64,000 nucleotides of DNA from Chlorokybus atmophyticus (taxonomy: Eukaryota; Plantae; Mesostigma and Chlorokybus algae). A model generated the notes under the pieces. The model made no database searches and had not been told where the DNA came from. It was given only the letters and a program-made list of their open reading frames with translations. Location: NCBI GenBank assembly GCA_009103225.1, contig RHPI01001292.1, positions 349,243 to 413,242 of the forward strand, in the 5' to 3' direction. Position 1 is the stretch's first letter; each line of letters opens with the position of its first letter. This document shows positions 31,812-45,616 of this stretch, in pieces. Both the position numbers and the translations under genes were made by a program.

Positions 31812-34228
31812 TCATTGACGGGTCTCCGCAAGAAGCGCCTTCGCAAGTTCGATGTGCAGCGCGTGACTGGCCTGTATCACCCAAAACGTGTGTTTGGTTG
31901 TAGTTTGTATGCTTGTCGTTACCAATCCAATGTGCCCGTCATATGACTAGCTAACGTTGCACATGGCTGTGAGCATAGTTGCTTCAGGCACATCGCGTAT
32001 GTACATGCATGCATGCATGCATGCATGCGTGTGTGCGAGCGCATGCACGCATGCTGGTATGCAGTGCGTGCGCACGTGTGTGGTGTTGCTAACACTGTGT
32101 GTTGTGGTCATTGGGCAACGATCAATGGTCCGAGGCAAGTCTTGCGCACCTTGTAAGCGACCACATGCGCAACGGGCAAGCCGGGGTTGCCATTCATGTT
32201 CAAGAGCGCCAGGTCGCCAATCAGATCGAGCAGCTTGTGCCTGCACGGCTCGTTGGCAAAGCGCAACGGCGGGTTCACCCAGCCAGTCTTCATGCTGCAA
32301 AGCACACAACCATACCGCATCATACTCAGCAAATTATCGCTGAACCTGTGAGGTAATACCTGCACACCAGGGCATTCTCCAACGATCCGCCCTTGATCAA
32401 ACCCATTGCGCGCAACTGCTCAATCTGCAAGACAAGGCAATAGCTTGAGTAACAAATGTGCACGTGCACAAGTATGCGCTTGCGCACGCACGCACTCACG
32501 CATGTGTAGGCACAAACCCGCAAAAACGCCAAATCTATAACACGCATGCTCAATCATCAACGTGTTCATGCTGACACCGCGTATAAGTGCTACCTGTTCG
32601 AGTATGCCGAACGTGCGCGCGGGCGCAACCTCCTCCTCGTAACTCTCCGCCGGCGTCCACGAGTACCATTGACTCCCCACCACAGGCAACTACAACATCA
32701 CACCACATCACCACACAACCCGCACACGCCACCTCCACTCCTTTCATTACACACCTGCGGGAAGTCTATCCCGTACGTGAGTCTTGTCTCGTTGGCGGGG
32801 AACGCAGCCACGAAGGCGTCGCCGCCTGTGACGGTGATGGGCTTGTGGACATGTAGAGGGACGCGGGAGTGGTGGGAATGTTGGGGTGAAGTGTTGTTGT
32901 TGGAGTGAGCGGGGATGACGCCGGAGTCGCGGATGGCGGCGACCCAGTCACGCGCGGAGCCGTCAAGCAAGGGGACCTGCATGAGGAGATGTGATACACA
33001 GCAACATGAGTTCGAGATATGTGCACGTGTGCGCGCGCGTGCGTGTGTATGCGCGTGGTTGTGCGTGTAGGCACTCACACGCGTGCGCACGCACACACAT
33101 GTGCATGGCTGTGTATATGTATCTGTTGACGCGCACACACGCATACAGGCGTGCGTGCGTGCACATGTACACGTGTTGGTGCGCACATGCCTGCACATGT
33201 ACATGCGCATGTGTGTATGCAGCCCCACATACACGTGTATCTGTATATCTTGTACCACCAGCTACCAGCTCAGCATCATGACCTTCCATGTACGTTCCCC
33301 ACACTACTACCCACCTCCGCTCCGCCCCGTAATTCAATCCGCGCGTTATCCACCCCGCACCCTTCCAACGCAGATAGCAGGTGCTCGACCGTTCTGATAG
33401 AAGTGTCCTTCGCTCCATCCCCAAGCGTCGTGCTCAGTTGGGTGTCGACCACGCTGTCGACCGTCGCCGCCACACGAAGCTGAGCCAGGAGACATAGATG
33501 AATACACACGTGCATGTACACGCACGCATGCACGCATGCACGCATACGTACGCATGCGCGCACACGCGCATGTGTGCGCCAACACCCGTGCAGATGCTAT
33601 ACTTGTATCAGAGCAGTAGCCAACTGAGGTAAGTGGTTGTTTCGATGGTGGTGTACTACCTCTTTGTTGTTGTCGTCAAAACAGGCAAAGTAGCGTCCTT
33701 CACCAGCTGCTGCAGGCATCACTCTCACCTGAGAAAATATACTTACTCTACTGCATGCAGCCATGCATTGCTATACACAGAGTAGCAGCTCTATGCGCCA
33801 TTATCAGAAGTAAAGTGAATCTACAAAAGGTACGACAGGATTATCATCCTTGAACAAATTATGGTGCAACAGTGTCTGACTTGTTGAAAAAGAATACGCG
33901 TACAGGTAATACAAAGTCCTCTGCCTCACACCTCAGCCAGCTCGCCGAGGTGAAGGCCCACGCCTGAGCGAGTGAACGCTGACCGCAGAGTGCACTGCTG
34001 CGAGGAGGATGTGGCGGCGGCGGCGGCGTTTTTTGATGATGATGAGGAGGAGGAGTTGGCAGTGGCGGAGGAGGAGGACGAGGCGGAGGGAGTGGAGGAG
34101 GAGGGTAGTGTGGCTACCACAGTCATGAGCGTTGAGGTCCTTCGCCTGCGCGAGAGGGATGTCAAGCGCATGCGAGCAGTGGAGTGCGCCGCTACGGATG
34201 CCGCAGCGGCCGCCGCCGCCGCCGCCAT
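31812..34228 (-). CDS. lpxC: UDP-3-O-acyl-N-acetylglucosamine deacetylase with an Ala/Ser/Arg-rich N-terminal targeting extension
   Basis: [91 protein letters not shown]|[13 protein letters not shown]. Zinc ligands (HLL, HK.LD) are intact. Stop at 31812-31814. Confidence 0.97.
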
Positions 34229-35505
34229 CGTTGCCGCCGCGGCCAGCAACAACGCCAACGTCGCCAGCAATGGCGCCAAAGTGTTGCAGCGGACATCAAC
34301 GCAAGTCATGTCTACATCTACACTTGTATACAGACTGTCTTGTATCCTCATCGCTGTATGTTAAGCATCCCGATATCGTTTACAGCCTCTACATCGGACT
34401 GTAACGGCGCGTTAGTTAACCGACGAGGGTGTATATCTGCTGCGCACGTGAGGAAGTGCTCAGCAAGCAAAGCAGTCAAACTTTACTACTGTTACCACTT
34501 CTTACTGCGCTGATATACATGGTGCCCTGCGGCGGCGGTTTCAGGTGAATGAGGACCCTGTTGTAAATAGCTCATTTAATTAGATTAAAACAATCACTGT
34601 GGTAGGAAGCGGCAGATTAGCGACAAGCACAAGTTTGCATTAAACGCAATAAAGGGGCTAACTATAGGCTGCAGTCAGGGGCCTGTGCTGGTCAGAGATC
34701 ACAAGAGCTAAGGCAGAGAAGAGATTAAAGAGAGTAAGAGTACGAGAGATAAGAGCCACCTTTAGTGAATCAAAAGTTTGACTGTGACTGAGTCTCCTCA
34801 CAGCAACGCAGCCCCTCTGGTACCAAGTAGGGGGTGTTAGTGCTGCCACTTGGCAAAACAACACCCCAAACTATCTCTTTCTCTCTCCCTCAGGACCGTG
34901 TGTATCTGTAACTGGTGGGAGGCAGAGAGAGAGAATGGACCGGTCCCAGGCTTTGACTGTAACGTCTAGCAATGATACTGCTGCTGTTGAGTATGACCAG
35001 CCCAGACTAGGCTGGTATATAGACCAGGCCAGAACAGCCACTACTTCAGTAGACCGACAAGCTACAGTCGCAGACCAGCGGCCTGGTCCGCTCACACCCA
35101 CACTCTCCTCCAGCCACTACAAGGAGGAGGAGCAGGACAGGGACAGAGAGGTGCTGCAAGAGAGAGGGTTAGGGGTTGGTTGACCAGGCCAAACTCCACA
35201 CCAGACCAGGCTGTGCAGCAGGCCAAAGGAGAGCAGGCGACCAGAACAGACCGGAGTGCACAGTGGAGAGACCAGGCTGCTGCTGCTGTTGCTGCTGCTG
35301 CGTGGTGTCGCAGACTTGTGGTGTGCATGAGCAAACTTAGGTGGGTGAGGTTGGAGAGTTTGACTACACTCGATGACAATGTGTGACACTTTCCCGCTCT
35401 GTGACACTCTGTCATACACAACACCAACTCGCTCGCCACAAAGCCACAGCCACACTCACTGTGTTTTTGTCCCCTGCAGCTGTGCTCTCCTCCCCGGCGC
35501 CAGCC

Positions 35506-38500
35506 ATGGCTCGCCCAGCCCACCTCCTCCTCTTCCTCCTCCTGGGGGTTCTCCTCTCTCACCCCACCTCCGCCCAGTATGACAACTCCACCTCCTACCC
35601 CGGCGACGAGCTCTTCCCCCTCTCCTCCGGCGTCTCTCCCTTCCCCGACGACCCCTCCCTCGTCGCCTCCGTCCAGGCCGCCCCGCAACCCCCCGCCCCC
35701 GCGGTCCTGACGGGAACCGTCTTCTGCGACGCGTGCAGGGATGGGAAGATGGGAGGAGCGCCGGATAGGGCACTGAGTGGGGTGCAGGTCATCGTCGTTT
35801 GCAGAGGTGAGGGGGGGGAGAAGGGTGTGGGTGTATCTGTATCTGTACTACAGATACAGATACAGAGCTTGTATCTGTACCTGTACCTGTATCTGTATCT
35901 GTGTGCATGTACGTTGTTGTTGATGTTGGTGTGTTGATTACTAACTCACCTCCTCCTCCTCCTCTCTGCAGCTACCGACAACACCATCTACAAGCACTTC
36001 GCCTTGACTGACTCCAAGGGTTTCTGGCGCGCTTCGGTCCGCAGCGTGGAGACGGAGTGGTACGCCCGCAAGCGTTTCGCCAACTGCACGGTGCACCCGT
36101 ACCGCAACCCACACAGCGACTGCAACACGATGATCGGACATGATAATTGTGCGCTGGATGCCGTGATGAAAGATTTGAGGTCAGGGGTCACGTATGGGGT
36201 CACGCCCAGGTGCTATACCGGAGCGAACAGACCAGCCGCGCCGGCGTGCCCAACACCGACGGCGAGCGCGGTGAGTGGGCATATACACTTATGCACAAGT
36301 GCGCGTACCAGTGTGTCAAAACACACATGTCCTTGCGTGCGTGCGTGCGTGCGTGTGCGTGTGTACATGTGAGGTTTTACTCCTGCCTGCGTCTGTGCGT
36401 GTGCGTGTTCGTGTGCGCATGCGTGTGCGCGTCTATGCACGCCTCTATCTACGCTTGCGTGCACATGTATGCGTCACACTGATACAATGATCGTTCTAAC
36501 ACATCCCCTCCACTCCACAGCCCGAGATCAACCCGACCGTTGGTCTCCGCACCCTCCGCAAGGACCACCCTCGTCTCCTCATCACCTCTTCCCAGGTCTC
36601 TTCCATGCGTTCCACTTGCAACGCTCCTTCCGGTCCACTGCGCGGCCCGGCCTATTGGATGTGTTGGTCCAACCTCAACACGGCCAACGACTACAAGAAG
36701 ACTCGCTTGTCCTCATTCCAGACCGACAACGGCCTCGGGATGGCCAGGGCCGCCATGGATAGGATCAGTTCACTCGCGGGGGCGTGGTTGGGTACCGGTG
36801 ATGCGAGCTTTGCGGGTGTGGCGAGGGAAGACTTGAGGTATCATGTGTTGGGGAGCACCAACTGGAACCCGGATAACTCGGTGGACCCCGGGTATCTGAA
36901 TATTGGGATGAGTCTGCAAGCAGCAGCGCTGGGATATGACTGGTTGTACTCGGAGCTGTCCACATCAGAGAGAGCTGTAAGTGAACGAGGTCACTCGCTT
37001 GTTGGCTCAGGCACCAAACACACACACACACACACACACACTGATACTCCCCTCTCCCCTCCAGGCTGTCTGGAACGCTGTCAAATACAAGGCTTTCCTC
37101 CCCGCTCTGGACCAATCCTCTCTGGAATACTTCTCCCAGACCTCCACCAACCTCAACGTGAACGTGTTGAGCGGTTACATCTCCGCCGCACTGGCCTTCG
37201 CGGACGTGGACTACGCGTTGTGTCGACAGATCCTCCTGCGTGCGGTGCCCGGGTTCAGCGCGGGGATGGGCATGATGAACCCAACAGGAGGGTGGTTTGA
37301 GAGCTATGTGTACTTGAGCATGATAGGGATGCATGCGGCCATAGCCATGTCGGCAATGGAGACGGCCATGGGAAGTGACTTTGCCATCGGGACGAGATAT
37401 GGCGTGCGACAATCATGTAAGAGAGGAGTTGATGTTGCTACTGTTGCTGTTGTGAGAGCTGTCTTGTACATGCACATGTGTGTAAAGTGCGCGCACGCAC
37501 GCATGTGCGCACACACGCACACCTGCACCCACATACTCACACTTACCCACACCTCCTCTCCTCAGCTTACTTCCGTGCTCACGGCGTGTCTCCATTGGGC
37601 GCCTTCTTCCACTTTGGCGACGACTCCACCACCGACAAAGCCATCTCCGCCCAGCTCTCTTTCTACTTGGCCGGCCGCACCGCCGACCAATGGTTGATGA
37701 ACTACGAGTCCAACTTGCGTGCAACAGGAGGCCCATACAAAGTCTTTTGGTCTGCTCGCAACACCAACGTGTTCAATGGGTTGGCCAAGTCCACACCACC
37801 CCCACTCGACGCACGCTTCCAGGGCTACCAGCTCGATAATGTGTACATGCGTACGGCGTGGGACAACGCTAATGCGGGGTGGATTGCTGTGAAGGGTGGA
37901 CAGAACCCGTGGAAGCCTTCGGGTGTGCACAACCACTTGGACTTGGGTTCCTTTGCGTTTGTTTTGAATGGAGTGGAGTGGTTCGGGGACCTCGGGGCCG
38001 ATAGTTACTCACTCAGTAGGTACTTCAACGACCGTTACGTGTACTATCGCCCACGCACGGAGGGACACAACACGTTGGCGATCGCCACAACCACGCAGAA
38101 AGAGCTCCAACTCAACAACCAGCCTCTCCACTCCTACTCCAAGAATGTTGGCTTCTACTCTTCACCGACACGTTCACACACCGTGTTGGACCTCACCAAC
38201 GCATATCCCGACAGCAAATCGGCTTACCGTGGACTCGCTCTACTCAAAGATGTGCCTGGAGGACTAGCGAGGATGCTTGTTCAAGATGAGATTGTGGCGA
38301 AGGGAGCTGCGATTGATGTGGTGAGCATGTTTCATACGAGGGCGGCGGTGAGTATTGCGCTGGATAGGAGATCGGTGGTGCTGACGCAAGGGGGGCAGAG
38401 ACTGAGGGGGTACATCCTAACTACCGATGGATACTTCTTGTAAGTGACAATGAGATGCACGCAACTACACATACACACACGTGAATGCACACAAGCCCAC

Positions 38501-38800
38501 GGACGCACACGTACATGGACTGTACAATAGCACACGCACACCCACACACACACCATGACTGACTTATACCTTCCCCCCCGCAGCACTATTTCATGCGACC
38601 CCACCTCCCTCAACGTCGACAAGGGCTCCGGTCCCGCCGAGAACAACAACGCGGGCGTGACCAACCTGATCGTGCGTCCCCAGATCGGTGCCGGGGCGCG
38701 CGTCGGGTCCACTAAGATCGCCGTGTTGTTCCAGTTGGATGGCACGACGGTGGCGAAACCGAGCGTGACGGCATCTGTCCTCACATGGCAAAAGAGTTGA
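35506..38800 (+). CDS. Secreted chimeric protein: signal peptide, Pollen Ole e 1-like domain and heparinase II/III-like (DUF4962 / oligo-alginate-lyase-type) polysaccharide lyase; six exons
   Basis: Exons 35506-35806, 35972-36270, 36521-36976, 37065-37416, 37566-38439 and 38584-38800 splice in frame. Signal MARPAHLLLFLLLGVLLSHPTSA. Ole e 1-like LTGTVFCDACRDG...LSGVQVIVVC...TDSKGFW. Lyase motifs DHPRLL, ALGYDWLY, GGWFESYVY, FFHFGD, YMRTAW, VKGG...HNHLDLGSF, DLGADSY and RTEGHNTL. Confidence 0.85.
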
Positions 38801-39346
38801 AAGGGGAGAGTTGATACAACTATATAGTCATTGTTTGGAGGAGGAGGAGGAGGAGGAGGATTTGTCATTCATTGATGAGATTATTATTCTTTGCTGACCT
38901 GCTGGAGGAGGAGGTCAACGGGCGGATGCGTAAAGTTGATTGCGGTGCGATAATGGTGGTAGGCTTGAATTGGGTTAGGCGGTTATACAGAGTAGTGTTA
39001 GGGCTTGGGCGCGCAAATGGTTGTTGTTGTTTGTTACTGTAGTGCTATTGATTAATGTATACATAGCGTGTGTATGTCACGCGTGTACGGACCCCAGTAG
39101 TAGTAGAGCTGCTGCTGGTAGAACGACGTTGTAATGTGTACCAACATTGAAGTTTGGTTTCTTTCCAAAAAGTCCCCCACGCTGCATCTCTGTGCTTGAC
39201 GTGACATATGACACCATGCTTGAGGTGGCGTGGTTGCATGCGTGTCCACGCGTGTTTGCATGTTGGTGCACGCGCACGCGCACCTCGTGTACTGTGTGAC
39301 GGTCACATCGACTAAACCAATACACAAGCGCAACACCAGCCCCGAC

Positions 39347-41369
39347 TCACAAGCGCTCGTACGCCGCAGCAAGCTCCCGCAGTGCTTTGGCTATCCTCAT
39401 CCCCCTCTCCCCGGTAAAGAGGTCCTCCCCTTCAACCCGCCACGCCCAGTTCCCCTCCGCGACCCCCGGGACATTCATCCTTGTCGAGGAGTCGAGAGCG
39501 AGGACGTCCTGCATGCTGACTATGGCTGTGCGGCCCACTGAGGAGAGGGCGCAACGGATGAAGTCCCAGGAGATGGAGGAACCGTCGGTGCCGAGGTAGG
39601 ATCTGCGGATGTGTGTGTGCGGGACAGTGTTGGTGGGGATGAGGTATGGGGTGATGGGAAGCAGCACAAGAGTTGAGTCGGGGTGTACCTGATGCGGTGC
39701 TTGGTCAGCTCGTCGGCCTGCCATCAAACGGAATGTCAATGAGTGCTGTTTTTGGATTTGTGTACAGTAATGTGTCTCGATGTTTGCATTCGCGTGTACG
39801 TGTGCACGTGCACGTGGGTGCGCGCACGCCTGCAAGGGCAAGCGTGCGGACATGTACGTACATCTGCGTGCACGCGCGCATGCAACTTGTGTAGGTCAGT
39901 ATGCATGTGTCTGCATGTCTGTCATTATGACTGTTTGTGTGCCAATGTGGGTGTGCGTGCTTGAGTGTGTGATGGTGTGCGCACGGACTCATGCGTGTGT
40001 GTGCGCGCACTTGCACATCGCACACCTTCTGGTAGTATCCCAGAACGGTGTCATTGTCATGTGTGCCCGGGTATACAACACTGTTCTCTCGGTGGTTATG
40101 TGGCAGATGCACGTTGCGCGGCTTGCCGTCTTCAAACGCGAAGAGCAGCACGCTCATGCCAGGCGCGCCCACACTCTCCCGCAGGGCCACCACGTCAGGC
40201 GTGATCACGCCGAGGTCCTCCGCCACGATCGCAGCACGCGCGTTGCCACCCAACCGCCGTGCAATGGCGTCGAAGAAACTTTGCCCTGGACCCACCCGCC
40301 ATTCACCTGACACACACACACACACACACCAAATCAACCCAACACGGCTCCCATATACACAACCTCTCGTGATGTGTCTGTGAAGTGGTAATCTTACCTT
40401 CCATTGCTGTTGCTGACTTTGCGTTAATAGCCCAATACCCCGCAAGCCCCCTAACACAGACAAGTCAATCGTGTTTGTAACACACTTTGAGGAGGTGACG
40501 CAATGTAACACAACTCGCGCATGGAGTGCACAACCCACCTGAAGTGGTCTATTCTCAACTCATCATACAACTCCAAGCTGCGCCGCAACCTCCCAGTCCA
40601 CCACGCATAGTCCTACACACATCACACACATCACACACACATTCCCACATAAGCCACCCACCCGACCCCCCACCCCCCACCCACCCACCACAACAACAAC
40701 ACCTCCTCACACCTCTTGTTGGTGCGCTGTCCAGTTGTACAGCGGCGACCCCCACCTCTGTCCCGTCGCAGAAAAGGCATCCGGCGGCACTCCCGAAACC
40801 TGGTGGTGGTGGTCGAAAGTCTCGAGGTAGTAGTAGTCTCTTGTTGTCTCATTCATAGCACGTGTGTCAAGAGATGGACTGAGTAAGTGATTCACTGACC
40901 TCTGCGGGGGCGCCCGTGACGGGGTCGAGGCAGAAGAGCGTGCGGTGGCACCACACGTCCGCGGAGTGGCCGCCGACGTAGATGGGGGCGTCGCCGAAGA
41001 GGGAGACGCCCTTGCTGTTGGCGTAAGACTTCAGTTCCTGCAGGCAATGTGAAGTGTTGGATTGGGGGTGCGTGGGTGGGTGCGGGTGCGGGTGCGGGTG
41101 CGGGTGCTTGCACGTGCTCGTGTGCGTGTGTGCGTGTGTGCGTGTGTCCTTGTACACGGCAGCTGTGCTACAAGTCGTACACAATGTGACCACATCAAAG
41201 AGAAATACTATGACACAGTGCAGTATCAGATAGTGCTGTCCACACCTGCCATTGCCGGTTGAAGAGGAACTGCTCAGCGACATAGACATCGACCTCATGA
41301 CCCTTTTCTGCCCACACTCTGGCCAGTGCATCCCTGGTGCACGCAAGCATCAGACTTCAAGCCCACACC

Positions 41370-41401
<32 letters not shown>

Positions 41402-44183
41402 CAACACTCGCTCACTTGTCCCTGTCCCTCAGCTCCGGCGGCCACTCCCAGAAGTTCTTCCCTCCCAACATGCGATCGATCGCCGTGAAGAGCCCCGCGT
41501 CCCAGGCCCACGCGTTGGCGGGGTCGGACTTCCACGCGTCGAAGTGGACGCGGAGGGCGGGGGGACCGGCGGGGGAGAGGAGACGGGAGGCGGCTTTGTG
41601 GAGCAAGGGGTCTGTGGGGGCATGTGGGTGGGTGCGCGTGTGCTTGTATATGTATATGCATGCGTGTGCGTGTATGCGTGCGTGCGTGCGTGCACGCGCT
41701 TGTGCTTTATTGCATGTAAGCGCGCGCGTGTGAGTGCGCCTGCGATTGTATGCATTGTGCACGTGCGCGTGCGCGTGTATGCATGTGCGCAAGTGCATGG
41801 GTGTGCACCCGCGCACATATGCGTATATGTGCGCGTGCAGGCGCGCATGGCTTGCTGGCACCTGAGACACACCCACGCACAGTTGCGCGTTCATGTGCGT
41901 GTTGAAGTACCTAGCACACACACCTTTTATGGCTGCGACAGCTGGGAAGTCAGCTCGGCCGGCGGGTAGCGGGTGTGGGCGGTCCGACTCGTCGAGGAGG
42001 CCGTCACCGATGAGGGCGTCTATCGCCACAAGCAGCGTGTTCCCTGCGCAATTCGCCCTGCGTGTATTGTAGTAAACACATACACACTCAACAATGGCAA
42101 GCCAGTCTCATGGTGCATGACTGCTAAGATGCACACTGTGTTGGTGCATCCGTGGCCTTGACGATGACGGAGACCGTGCGTGCGGGTTGTTGTTCTGTGT
42201 GAGTTGGTACACATAACAACGTGTCAAAGGCCCACAGTACCAGCGCTGGAATCAGAGCCGGAGTATGGTGACCAGTAGTCTGGACGGCTTGGTGTGGGTC
42301 TACCAGGCGGCACCAAGGGCAACACCTGCCAGCACGCACACCCGCATACGACCTTCATCACCTCAAGCATGTGCATCATGTCAAACCCCCAAACATTCTC
42401 TCAGCCTCACCTGCCATATGGTCATCCCCGCTTCCGCCATCCAGTCCACGAACCGGTACGCGTGGTACCCCATGTCCCCGCAGCCGGCGGGTCCCGGGAG
42501 GGACGTCGGGTGGAGCAGCACGCCCGCGCGACGCCTCCTCGCGGGTGAGGAGGAAGCCTCTGCATACGGCTGAGGCATGGCGTGACCGACGTGGGGATCG
42601 GAGGCCCAGACGGACTCGGGGGCAGTGATGAGTTGGTCCTCTGTTGCAAAGAGGAGGAGACGTAGTCACAACCCAACATTAACTTCATACAACTCGCGCA
42701 TCCACGCACCTGTCAGCGACAAGCGAGTGCGCACGCGCACACATGCACGCACATGCAGGTGCGTATGCATACGCACACGCATGTGCACACATGTATGCAC
42801 GCACACAGTCACAGGCACACGCGCGCACGCGCACGTGTGCACGCGTATGCGCACGGGCACATGCAAGCACAACCTACCTGTGATGGAGAGTGCCATGAGC
42901 GCTTTGAGGTCCGCTCTCACGCGCTCGAACTCGGCCGCCGCCTCCTGCTGGCTGCGAGGGGGCCTGCCCGCGGCCTCCCAGCGCTGGTAAGCCCACTTCT
43001 CGCACAGACGCAGCGACGGCTCCACTGATGATGAGGGTGATGATAAACTCTGCTGGCCGTCTCGCTTGGCACACCCTGCGCGCATGCGCACTGAGAGAGT
43101 GTGTGTGCACGCGTGACTGTGCATGTGTGCACGCGTGCGCGCACATGTGCACACGCACACACATGCGCACGCGTGTATGTGTGTGCTTGTGTGAGAGTGA
43201 GCAAGTGTTGTATTGCTTCATCATGAGGCAGTGGGACTCACCAATGCCAGCTGGCAGCGGTGGAGGCTGTGGTGGTGGTGGTGGCGTTGGTGCCGGCTCT
43301 GTTACGTAAAGAGGGATGGAAAAGGGCGTGCCGGGTATGCCGTCGCGGTTGTGCCACACGCCCGAGTCGCCCTCGCGCACGGCGAACTGAAGCTGCGTCC
43401 TGGGCGCCACACGACCGAGAGGCAAGACAGTCTGCTGCACGCCATCATCCCCCTGTGTGGTGCAAGGTCAACGTAGCACACATTCAGACGCCCAGGCTCG
43501 CATACGCATGTGCACGCACAAACACATAGGTACATTTGCACCTATGCATGTGCGTGTGCACTCGTATATACATACACGCACACGCACACGCGCACGCGCA
43601 CGAATTTCCATTTCCACCCCACCCTGAGTAGTGTTTCGACGGCCTGCCCCGCGACATCCACCGACCCCGCGGGCCAGCAGTTGTTGGGCGGCTGCTCCCA
43701 TCTGCTCCCATTTGCAAGCGCATTCACCAGTCCCCAGTGCAGCGCCAGTCGACCGCGGGCACCCTCAGAACACACGTGAACGTGGACGCTACCGTCCGAA
43801 GACTCAAAGACAGAAACCTGGGTGAGATTGTTGTAGTTGTTGTTGTTGTTGACGTTGTTGTTGATGCTGATGAAGCGGCACTGACTCGATCTTACCTTGA
43901 TGAGGCCTGAATTGTTTGGGAGGTTGAAGGTGTGGTTGGCTTTGGTTAGGGCAGAGAGGGTTGTAAGCGTGCGCTGCGTCCTCCTTCTCCTTCTTGAGGA
44001 TGTGATGCTATGGCGTTTATATCGTAGTGGGTGGTTGTTGTGAAGTGGTTGCGATGCGGTGTTGTGAAACGCTTTGTTGCTGGGCCTCCGCCAGCTTGCT
44101 GCTGATGAAGCAGCCTGCTGTCGCTGATGAGGCAGCTGCCATGAGGGTGATGGTGGCAACCACCTCGCAGCCAGCGACCACAT
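39347..44183 (-). CDS. DPE1: Plastid 4-alpha-glucanotransferase (D-enzyme, GH77) with a transit peptide and an extra N-terminal CBM45 plus GWD-like helical segment
   Basis: RRRAGVLLHPTSLPG, WQ|VLPLVPP...YWSPYSG, GDAPIYVGGHSADVW, VSGVPPDAFSATGQRWGSPLY, catalytic RIDHFRG, VAEDLG and GTHDND, then RMNVPG...GNWAWR. Upstream in-frame exons contain LALHWG...WEQPP...P.GS...AVET and LQFAVRE...WHN...F.IPL. Stop at 39347-39349. Confidence 0.93.
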
Positions 44184-45616
44184 GCGCTTGCTTGTGTTGA
44201 GAATGCAAATGTCTTGGAAAGCTTCAGTCTCAGGCTTTGTTGCAGCTTCTGTCTGCATGCAAAGGAGAAAGTCACGCCTGCCAGCTGGCACACAGTACAC
44301 GCGTTGCACACGCAAATCTACCCAATGCAGCAGGGTTCGGATGAGTGTGTGCTACTGAGGCAGGGCATGCCCATGTCCTTGTCAATGTAGCAATGAACGA
44401 CATGTCATTGCTAGCACGGTCACTTCGCACGAGGCAGGCAAGCCTGGCCTCTCTTTCCTCTTGCCGCCGCCGCCGCCGCCGCCGCCGTCGCCGTGTGCGT
44501 GTCACTGTCCAGCTTCCGCTCTAGGTCTGATAAGTTATGCATCAATGAAGTGACATTATTGGACGAATCTCGTATGATTGGCAATGGTGTAAGTAAGGGA
44601 GTTTTACCAAGCCAAGTTGGCTTTTTACTAACCCACTTCAAGCTGCAAAAGTCCCCAAGTGTTCATTTCGCATCAGCAATTTCAAGCATGTTCAAGATGA
44701 AGTGTGGCTGTATAGATGCTTGGAAGTAGCTACATACATTGCAGCATCATATTCTTGTTAAGCAACAGATAATAAAAAAGATGCATTGCAATAAAATGAA
44801 TACGCAACTGTACCTACATATCTGTGGCACTCAATTATCCAGCATGCGTCTGTCCCAACTTAGCCATATGCGTAAATTGCTTGCAAAGCCAAACGTTATG
44901 AATAAGTGGCAGCGTTGCGCGCGTGCATACATTCATGTGCGGCTGCGCTTAGCGATTTATCAATGATGTTCATCCAAGGAGGAACGCTTCTTCTTGATGT
45001 GACCGACGTGCAACACAATACTATTGTGTTGCATAATGTTCACTGTCACATTTATCGCAGCTGGTGTGATGCCTTGATTATTGCCATCACCTATATTAGC
45101 TAAGTTTACTTTTGCAAGAAGCTGCCCGCAAAAGATGCATGTTATTACCCGTTGCAGTTGTCTGTTCAACATATGGTGTTTGTACACAATCATGAGCACT
45201 CATGCTGCTTCAAACATCATGAATGCATCGTGCGACACGTTCATTCACGTGAACTTTGTAGCCAATATAGAAGGCCCCTGTTAAAGTATATCTCCTCCCA
45301 CTTATTTGTTCCTGTTATTAATGTAAAAAAGTAGTTTTGACATTGATAGTATTACAATAAATGCAAAGTCAGCAGTGTATGTACAATGGATCGAATGGTT
45401 GTTTGATGACATAATGCTATTGAAAATCATGTAATTTGTTTGTTTTTATGTGACATAGATGCGTTTAACAACCAGCCACTAACAAGTGCATTAATAGCTT
45501 AAAAGCGGTTACAAGGAATTATTTACGTATATTATACCAGTACGCAATCAATACGTGTGACAGACAACTAAGATACTTACATGTAATATACCTCAAAACA
45601 TACCACCTTAATATAG

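Follow-up and report, generated by a model that had tools for sequence, protein, structure and literature searches.

In the window (the whole 64,000-nucleotide stretch of Chlorokybus atmophyticus DNA analysed here), the + strand gene at 35506..38800 probably encodes, at a likelihood that we put at roughly 0.7, a secreted protein of the alga's nuclear genome that combines an Ole e 1-like module with a PL35-like enzyme, the lyase being of bacterial origin and having a role in the alga's own matrix. It is the first fusion of an Ole e 1 domain to an enzyme that we could find in a literature search, which returned no paper on an Ole e 1-lyase fusion. An earlier note, made from the sequence alone, had read the gene as a horizontally acquired lyase joined to a plant wall-targeting module. 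This overall interpretation is supported, as the reading of the N-terminus as Ole e 1, the limited spread of the architecture and the placement of the lyase have all held.

Gene structure and the Ole e 1-like module

The gene model consists of six exons on the + strand (35506-35806, 35972-36270, 36521-36976, 37065-37416, 37566-38439 and 38584-38800), with the stop codon at 38798-38800. All five introns are GT..AG and the spliced coding sequence of 2499 nt is in frame with a single stop, giving a protein of 832 amino acids and bearing out the in-frame six-exon gene that had been proposed. The motifs noticed at that time are likewise all present in the translation, namely a signal peptide, GTVFCDAC (aa 70-77), HPRL (216-219), the W-FE-Y-Y motif (GGWFESYVY, around 435), HNHLD (591-595) and GHNTL (636-640). 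The domain, structure and large searches described below were carried out with exon pieces and paralogues rather than with the whole spliced 832-residue protein.

That exons 1-6 form a single transcript is supported indirectly, by the gene model, the paralogues and the exon-limited conservation in a relative. The locus was found in two Chlorokybus-labelled samples, and the matches to it in three sequencing runs, none of them identified as RNA, are contigs; these runs appear to be of DNA, as one contig crosses intron 3 unspliced. In a relative that is ~92% identical (run X2), conservation ends 4-26 nt beyond the predicted exon edges reached by the contig, and intron 2 is replaced by 172 unalignable letters, with both flanking exons conserved. 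The contig from this relative (1701 letters) is collinear with exons 1-5, with some of exon 1 and some of exon 4 missing. Third codon positions account for 25 of the 40 listed differences between it and the window gene (p = 1.5e-4), a bias that we count as a sign for selection on the predicted protein.

The putative signal peptide (aa 1-24, MARPAHLLLFLLLGVLLSHPTSAQ; 35506..35577, +) was read from the translation and shows, by eye, basic residues at its start, then a hydrophobic core rich in Leu and a cleavage motif of small residues. It is followed by the Ole e 1-like module (aa 69-193; 35710..36249, +), which is encoded by exons 1-2, is interrupted by intron 1 (35807-35971, +) and carries the G-x-V-F-C-D-x-C-R signature as GTVFCDACR at aa 70-78. 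The module contains eight Cys residues (74, 77, 99, 139, 151, 160, 181 and 193), all of which are kept in the alignment of three paralogues. The spacings of Cys 74/77/99/139/151/193 are 3, 22, 40, 12 and 42; for Ole e 1 itself we take the corresponding Cys to be 19/22/43/78/90/131, with spacings of 3, 21, 35, 12 and 41.

Pfam searches with the Ole e 1 profile (PF01190) gave 14.4 bits for exon 1 (profile positions 2-33) and 18.2 bits for exon 2 (positions 45-90), each below the gathering cut-off of 23 bits, with a rough sum of ~32.6 bits for what appears to be one domain split by intron 1. The corresponding modules of two paralogues, P0001 and P0003, score 27.1 and 33.7 bits, above the cut-off, and the only PDB matches to a profile of the module are Pla l 1 (E 6e-5) and Lig v 1, which favours reading the N-terminus as Ole e 1, in line with the earlier note. 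A weak AF2 model of the P0003 module (pLDDT 55) has Lig v 1 and Pla l 1 as its top Foldseek matches (E 4e-3), and Pla l 1 is also its top match in VIA (Z 6.7), where generic beta-sandwiches reach Z 5-6.5. No match was found with phmmer for exon 2 alone against the PDB, or in a word-based protein search with the profile of the N-terminal module, and an Atlas feature search with the module gave only sub-threshold bacterial hypothetical proteins and a faint TTR-52 signal.

A short Pro/Thr/Ala linker connects the PAC-type Ole e 1 module to the lyase. Intron 2 (36271..36520, +; phase 0), the longest intron of the gene at 250 nt, lies at the junction between the module with its linker and the lyase. 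Homology to the bacterial lyases begins at aa ~206-210, which is 5-9 residues past the start of exon 3; the domain boundary therefore falls at intron 2, where the earlier note had placed it. An intron at the junction fits exon shuffling as the possible mechanism of fusion.

The lyase domain and its predicted active site

The predicted PL35-like polysaccharide lyase (aa 201-832; 36521..38797, +) aligns over its full length with bacterial enzymes. Exons 3-4 and the start of exon 5 encode an (alpha/alpha)6 toroid, while an antiparallel beta-sandwich is encoded by exons 5-6. With exon pieces as queries, Pfam gave 38.3 bits for Hepar_II_III_C on exon 5 and a faint match to DUF4962 on exon 3. The closest solved chains are all PL35 (9o3q, 8khv and 8khw). 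Exon 5 matches 8khw (E 2e-10), 9o3q (2e-8) and 8khv (3e-8), with a PL33 chain next best at 2e-5, exon 4 matches 8khw and 8khv only, and the lyase of P0003 matches 9o3q with an E-value of 6e-29. The model of P0003, which is 38% identical to the window protein over its full length, has a pLDDT > 90 in its lyase part, and this paralogue model, rather than one of the window's own protein, has 8khv as its best Foldseek match (E 3e-35, TM 0.85). The lyase is thus closest to CAZy PL35, a better match than any other PL family. The domain had been described as a heparinase II/III-like lyase; a full-length lyase of this fold is indeed present, but it is nearest to PL35 and not to the heparinase II/III families proper.

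Alignment to 8khv identified Asn381 (37149..37151, +) as the predicted equivalent of Asn192 of GAGase II, the carboxylate neutraliser, and Tyr435 (37311..37313, +) as that of the catalytic Tyr246. In the HNHLD motif (37928..37942, +), His591 would be the catalytic His (His401), and His593 and Asp595 would be Mn2+ ligands (His403 and Asp405). The other two metal ligands are predicted to be Asp611 (37988..37990, +), equivalent to Asp421, and His637 (38066..38068, +), equivalent to His457 and located within the invariant TEGHNT motif. By our own reckoning, the chain numbering of 8khv plus 22 presumably gives the numbering in the GAGase II paper. In GAGase II, N192, Y246 and H401 form the triad, and His403, Asp405, Asp421 and His457 form the Mn2+ site (PMC12088678). 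The Asn381/Tyr435/His591 triad is invariant among the Chlorokybus paralogues and bacterial sisters in a 14-sequence alignment, and all four Mn2+ ligands (H593, D595, D611 and H637) are present in the alignment to the PL35 structures. The residue before the neutralising Asn is Thr380, which aligns to the position of His188 in GAGase III.

Paralogues and the origin of the lyase

The family search, which had no specific query of Mesostigma, gave 2609 matches, and names were retrieved for 20 of the best 150. The seven best matches outside bacteria are all annotated Chlorokybus atmophyticus paralogues in EukProt, and no other eukaryotic relative was seen among the best matches. P0001 and P0003 align with the window protein across both the Ole e 1 module and the lyase, and the module is present in three members of one subclade, the window gene and these two. 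Among the sequences searched, the Ole e 1-lyase architecture was seen only in Chlorokybus paralogues, with none in bacterial relatives or elsewhere, which agrees with the suggestion that it is not widespread. The lyase family is not uniformly extracellular, because some paralogues (P0004 and P0005) have no signal peptide.

The seven Chlorokybus rows, the window gene and six paralogues, form one clade (100/100), and wider trees agree. All labelled tree neighbours of this clade are bacterial, from many phyla, and the nearest Atlas clusters are also bacterial; the lyase is hence not part of a vertically inherited eukaryotic clade, in keeping with the horizontal acquisition that had been proposed. 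The tree is unrooted, with a weakly supported sister group of the Chlorokybus clade (80/56) and a Chlorokybus stem of 0.95 changes per site, and the clade lies within a starred subclade that holds Myxococcota and Bacteroidota rows. The best non-Chlorokybus matches among the 2609 are all bacterial or metagenomic and are uninterrupted open reading frames. In metagenomes, no relative exceeded about 42% identity, full-length matches were at most 38% identical and a scan with exon 5 of the window gene alone gave no match; a word-based protein search with exon 5 found short bacterial fragments only. A search of viral contigs found no relatives, so nothing points to a virus as the vector.

The bacterial sister sequences have lipoprotein-type, low-complexity N-termini and no Ole e 1 module. 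Inheritance of the N-terminal module from the bacterial donor was rejected because such low-complexity N-termini are all that the sisters have. The lyase gene is flanked on the contig by genes for a GH77 DPE1 and for LpxC; its GC3 is 0.72-0.81 versus 0.58-0.66 for these neighbours. Bacterial contamination was rejected on account of the five spliceosomal introns, the flanking DPE1 and LpxC genes and the annotated paralogues, and the lyase gene is integrated in the host nuclear genome.

The most likely history, judging from the sequence comparisons, is a single old bacterial transfer followed by intron gain, duplication and fusion. The donor may have been a bacterium near the Myxococcota, a placement with weak support, and the recipient would have been the Chlorokybus lineage. 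After the transfer the lyase gene would have gained introns and been duplicated, and one copy would have come to lie downstream of two resident Ole e 1 exons, with the junction at the present intron 2.

Proposed function and comparison with known systems

Chlorokybus is an early-branching relative of land plants. It lives in mucilage on soil and rock, and its 'pectin' carries sulphate, contains much GlcA and L-Gal and withstood all of the land-plant wall enzymes that were tried on it (PMC10953000). The annotation of the Chlorokybus genome includes neither pectate lyases nor rhamnogalacturonan lyases (PMC7027972). We infer the function of the Ole e 1-lyase protein from its sequence, and the favoured substrate, also inferred, is the alga's own sulphated GlcA/L-Gal 'pseudo-pectin'. 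The enzyme would act by metal-assisted beta-elimination at a 4-linked uronic acid, in which Asn381 would neutralise the carboxylate, His591 would abstract H5 and Tyr435 would protonate the leaving oxygen; by analogy with the PL35 GAGases, cleavage would probably be endo-acting. Its target would be the anionic matrix of the alga, either the sulphated GlcA-(1->4)-L-Gal 'pseudo-pectin' or the sheath, and the Ole e 1 module would keep it in the wall. The enzyme might be used as packets grow, when cells separate or when zoospores are released. The only linkage established for the 'pseudo-pectin' is GlcA-(1->4)-L-Gal (PMC10953000), and a lyase needs an O4-substituted uronic acid.

The same protein could instead be directed at foreign polymers (alginate-like, glucuronan or GAG-like), as acidic exopolysaccharides of mucilage-dwelling microbes, for defence, biofilm control or nutrition. 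The substrate spectra of PL35 enzymes are very broad and include alginate (PMC12088678), related proteins are found in bacteria of soil and fresh water that break down polymers of this kind, and the alga itself lives in mucilage. The at least eight diverged paralogues, some of them apparently non-secreted, and the attached plant module, which resides in the wall, nevertheless point more to an endogenous role, and Thr380 occupies the position of His188, which GAGase III needs for its alginate activity (PMC12088678); a foreign target is therefore rather doubtful. We give little credence to a catalytic domain that works as a uronic-acid C5-epimerase, like the animal dermatan-sulphate epimerase, and modifies the polymer without cutting it. 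Human DS-epimerase 1 (6hzn) does share the fold and the His/Tyr/His site (Foldseek E 5e-18), but the match to PL35 is much closer (TM 0.85 versus 0.60; sequence E-values of about 1e-29 to 1e-10) and no residue of the PL35 triad or metal site has been lost.

It is also very unlikely that the fusion is an artefact of the gene model and that there are really two genes, a small one for an Ole e 1 protein (exons 1-2) and another for the lyase (exons 3-6). A search of sequencing runs found no RNA run with the locus and the exon 2-3 join spans the longest intron of the gene, but exon 2 contains no stop codon, exon 3 has neither a Met nor a signal peptide before the conserved HPRL (the first Met is aa 229) and the intron phases match across canonical splice sites. 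Moreover, independently annotated paralogues that are only 38% identical share the fused order, and the contig of the relative is collinear over exons 1-5. An ancient vertical eukaryotic gene lost everywhere else, or a transfer from the alga to bacteria, would be compatible with an unrooted tree and a Chlorokybus stem as long as 0.95 changes per site. Either is highly improbable when the family spans many bacterial phyla, the best non-Chlorokybus sequences among the 2609 matches are bacterial or metagenomic and Chlorokybus sits inside the starred subclade with Myxococcota and Bacteroidota rows.

The reading of a secreted enzyme with a role in the alga's own matrix has several implications. A plant-type Ole e 1 wall module and a bacterial-related lyase in one secreted protein make it a candidate remodeller of the acidic, sulphated slime, and the secreted PL35-like family, predicted to be catalytically intact, provides the first concrete candidates for matrix remodelling in Chlorokybus. 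More tentatively, and with somewhat less than even confidence, we suggest that the alga domesticated and expanded a bacterial PL35 lyase and that the Ole e 1 fusion is a wall-tethered enzyme that cuts its own 'pseudo-pectin'. If this is true, matrix turnover in this lineage would have relied on chemistry borrowed from bacteria at a time when land-plant pectin and pectate lyases did not yet exist, and the Ole e 1 domain would target an enzyme by binding carbohydrates or AGPs. The fusion could accordingly help with the long-open question of the ligands of Ole e 1/PAC domains, and the PL35-like lyases are potential tools for dissecting the structure of the 'pseudo-pectin'. The family would also be a further well-defined case of horizontal CAZyme acquisition in an early-branching streptophyte, in which the gene gained introns, multiplied and underwent a domain fusion.

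Among known systems, the PL35 GAG lyases (GAGase II, 8KHV; GAGase VII, 8KHW; Bacteroides chondroitinase, 9O3Q) are the best sequence and fold matches, yet with only about 20-30% identity. They share the toroid and beta-sandwich fold, the Asn/Tyr/His triad, the His-x-His-x-Asp...Asp...His metal site and a size of ~600 aa, whereas the Chlorokybus gene is eukaryotic, has five introns and an Ole e 1 fusion, encodes Thr before the neutralising Asn where PL35 has Asn or His, and its product probably acts on something other than an animal GAG. The PL15/PL17/PL39 alginate lyases and PL21/PL12 heparinases have the same fold class and His/Tyr mechanism (PMC12088678), but are far weaker matches (TM 0.5-0.6, identity 13-17%), and the extra N-terminal domain of the PL15 type is absent from the Chlorokybus lyase. 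The closest relatives are uncharacterised bacterial DUF4962/Hepar_II_III_C proteins, which are 30-38% identical over their full length and have the same invariant motifs; unlike the Chlorokybus protein, they have lipoprotein or plain signal peptides with no Ole e 1 module, and their genes have no introns. Their hosts include Myxococcota, Verrucomicrobiota, Planctomycetota, Acidobacteriota and others. The plant Ole e 1/PAC proteins (Ole e 1, Pla l 1 4Z8W, Lig v 1 6YOA, LAT52 and AGP31) are also secreted and share the G-x-V-[YF]-C-D-x-C signature and Cys spacing, a match at the Pfam/profile level. To our knowledge, proteins of the Ole e 1 family either consist of the domain alone or combine it with Pro/His-rich or AGP regions, whereas the Chlorokybus module has two extra Cys and precedes an enzyme.

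Structure of the fusion gene

Reading of the region 35200-39200 with splicing at canonical sites gave a gene of six exons on the forward strand (35506-35806, 35972-36270, 36521-36976, 37065-37416, 37566-38439 and 38584-38800), all five introns of which are GT..AG. The coding sequence of 2499 nt encodes 832 amino acids. Residues 1-24 are a typical signal peptide, followed by a moderately proline-rich stretch, a module at approximately residues 69-193 that contains GTVFCDACR and eight cysteines, a linker (PTPTASA/PEINPT) and a lyase part of about 630 residues that aligns end-to-end with bacterial lyases. The six-exon Ole e 1-lyase gene described in the earlier note is confirmed by the canonical introns, the 832-residue reading frame and the motifs it listed, all of which are found in the spliced translation. 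The fusion gene is present as one copy within the 64-kb window.

Simple repeats are found in intron 1 (TGTATC/TGTACC units, about 35838-35900), in intron 3 ((CA)n, about 37020-37042) and in the presumed 3' UTR, where a (GGA)n run lies at 38840-38862, ~40 nt past the stop codon. The GTGC/GTGCGT-rich stretch of intron 2 (36336-36452) was represented by short contigs at a depth of 97 to 2698 in all three sequencing runs, indicating a common genomic simple repeat.

An alternative explanation is that the fusion is an artefact of the gene model. Exon 2 lacks a stop codon, exon 3 contains neither a start codon nor a signal peptide upstream of the conserved HPRL motif, and the module order is identical in paralogues of only 38% identity. 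Sequence identical to the gene was found in run X1, but it is unspliced across intron 3, so this run is probably DNA. In run X2, which carries the same organism label, a 1701-letter contig from a relative (~92% identity to the window) is collinear with exons 1-5; the likeness stops 4-26 nt beyond each predicted exon edge within the contig's reach, with unalignable letters in place of introns 2 and 3. Third codon positions hold 25 of the 40 listed differences between X2 and the window (p = 1.5e-4). This pattern supports the exon map as well as purifying selection that extends to the Ole e 1 exon. Two stretches, 35733-35967 and 37244-37556, are missing from the X2 contig, each comprising the 3' part of an exon and the next intron. 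The gap ends are not canonical splice sites, 20 letters and 1 letter are found in place of the missing stretches, and either an assembly artefact or a copy damaged in that strain could account for the gaps. Together, the data support a single predicted gene containing the Ole e 1 and lyase exons.

The Ole e 1-like module

Pfam searches were run on the exon pieces rather than on the whole spliced protein, and Ole e 1 matched exon 1 (14.4 bits, profile positions 2-33) and exon 2 (18.2 bits, positions 45-90) below the cut-off of 23 bits. These matches appear to be the halves of a single domain with intron 1 between them. The homologous modules of two paralogues exceed the cut-off (27.1 and 33.7 bits), and the only matches of the module profile in the PDB were the Ole e 1-family proteins Pla l 1 (E 6e-5) and Lig v 1 (E 0.28). 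The structure model of a paralogue module was weak (pLDDT 55); Foldseek nevertheless ranked Lig v 1 and Pla l 1 highest, and a search independent of Foldseek also had Pla l 1 as its best match (Z 6.7). Generic beta-sandwiches were close behind Pla l 1, so the fold evidence is not decisive alone. All eight cysteines of the module are kept across three paralogues, and six of them are spaced as in Ole e 1.

Relatives and probable bacterial origin of the lyase

With exon 5 as the query, an exhaustive HMMER search revealed 2609 relatives in libraries from which the window's own protein is absent. Seven of the ten best matches are annotated C. atmophyticus proteins (EukProt/JGI Chlat1) with 40-54% identity to exon 5. 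Two paralogues, P0001 and P0003, share 38% identity with the window's protein in alignments spanning the Ole e 1 module to the lyase end. P0003 has a further 446 C-terminal residues (780-1225) without a Pfam match. The paralogues P0004 and P0005 form their own subclade and lack both the signal peptide and the Ole e 1 module, suggesting that some family members may not be secreted; the N-terminus of P0004 is a Gly/His-rich tract and that of P0005 (MGQAASSC) resembles an acylation motif.

The best non-algal match, P0006 from Paenibacillus sabuli, is a giant DNRLRE-domain protein of 3123 aa in which two lyase domains lie in tandem (residues 45-610 and 1582-2143). A scan of bacterial genomes gave hundreds of full-length relatives (about 30-33% identity) in the Verrucomicrobiota, Planctomycetota, Acidobacteriota, Myxococcota, Armatimonadota, Chloroflexota and others. 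Metagenomes contained no closer relatives (full-length matches up to ~38% identity, partial up to 42%), none were found in viral contigs, and the nearest Atlas clusters are 100% bacterial. The N-termini of the bacterial sisters have lipoprotein-type signals and low-complexity linkers without an Ole e 1 module.

The window's gene clusters with six paralogues in a single clade of a 188-row tree, within a starred group whose other nameable members are Myxococcota (Kofleriaceae and a Myxococcales MAG) and Hymenobacter. IQ-TREE analysis of 45 rows gave the Chlorokybus clade support of 100/100, with P0001 as sister of the window's gene (95/80) and a Myxococcota-type clade as the nearest outside group (only 80/56); addition of 72 metagenomic sequences left the placement unchanged. 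The alternative is vertical descent of the lyase, and the tree is unrooted, with names looked up for 20 of the 150 best matches; the named neighbours are bacterial, which argues for the horizontally acquired lyase proposed in the earlier note. Its overall interpretation, including the Ole e 1 identity of the N-terminus, is supported, with a single transcript and the function being predicted. Acquisition by transfer, with later expansion in Chlorokybus, is the supported reading.

Bacterial contamination was rejected, as five spliceosomal introns interrupt the gene, three of them within the bacterial-type part. The gene is flanked on the same contig by a GH77 4-alpha-glucanotransferase (DPE1) gene carrying a GWD-like N-terminal module downstream (39347-44315, reverse strand; Pfam 96 bits on 39705-40538) and by an LpxC (UDP-3-O-acyl-GlcNAc deacetylase) ORF piece upstream (32698-33258, reverse strand; 45 bits). 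LpxC belongs to the plant lipid A-like pathway. The upstream exon of DPE1 gives a 36.9-bit match, on 43542-44315, to the Ig-like N-terminal domain of alpha-glucan water dikinase. GC3 of the window's gene is 0.72-0.81, compared with 0.58-0.66 in these neighbours. The Chlorokybus stem branch is long (0.95 changes per site) and the paralogues are deeply diverged; the acquisition does not appear to be recent.

Full-text literature searches revealed no paper linking Chlorokybus with heparinase, Ole e 1 with a polysaccharide-lyase fusion, or heparinase, HGT and streptophytes. The main text of the genome paper (PMC7027972) mentions neither the fusion gene nor HGT, and no published comment was found on the paralogues, which are public gene models. 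The enzyme family and the Ole e 1 domain are already known; the host lineage, the domain architecture and the proposed acquisition by transfer followed by expansion are new.

Lyase class and proposed function

Pfam matched Hepar_II_III_C to exon 5 (38.3 bits) and, faintly, DUF4962 to exon 3. Among proteins of solved structure, the PL35 enzymes 9o3q (a Bacteroides chondroitinase), 8khv (GAGase II) and 8khw (GAGase VII) are nearest in sequence, with PL33 far behind. The model of the P0003 lyase part is confident (pLDDT >90) and superposes best on GAGase II (8khv, TM 0.85), followed by PL15, PL21, PL17, PL33 and PL12 enzymes. Using the residue roles from the PL35 structure paper (PMC12088678), the window's protein retains N381 as the neutraliser Asn, Y435 and H591 as the catalytic Tyr and His, and all four Mn2+ ligands (H593, D595, D611 and H637), and these are invariant across the Chlorokybus paralogues and bacterial sisters. 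These data establish the protein's PL35-like class and its intact active site.

We infer that the secreted enzyme would cut a polymer with 4-substituted uronic acid by metal-assisted beta-elimination. As plant PAC/Ole e 1 domains are wall proteins and the PAC domain of AGP31 binds galactans, the module may retain the enzyme in the AGP-containing sheath. The best candidate substrate would be the alga's own 'pseudo-pectin', which is sulphated, has high contents of GlcA and L-Gal, includes beta-D-GlcA-(1->4)-L-Gal units and resists every land-plant wall enzyme tested (PMC10953000); no pectate or rhamnogalacturonan lyases are listed for this genome in the genome paper (PMC7027972; see also PMC10762512). 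The lyase could alternatively act on microbial exopolysaccharides, or the catalytic domain could have epimerase rather than lyase chemistry, human dermatan-sulphate epimerase having the same fold as the P0003 model. Compared with characterised PL35 lyases, the putative algal lyase differs in the residue preceding the neutraliser Asn, which is Thr in the window's protein, His in the alginate-active GAGase III and Asn in GAGase II.
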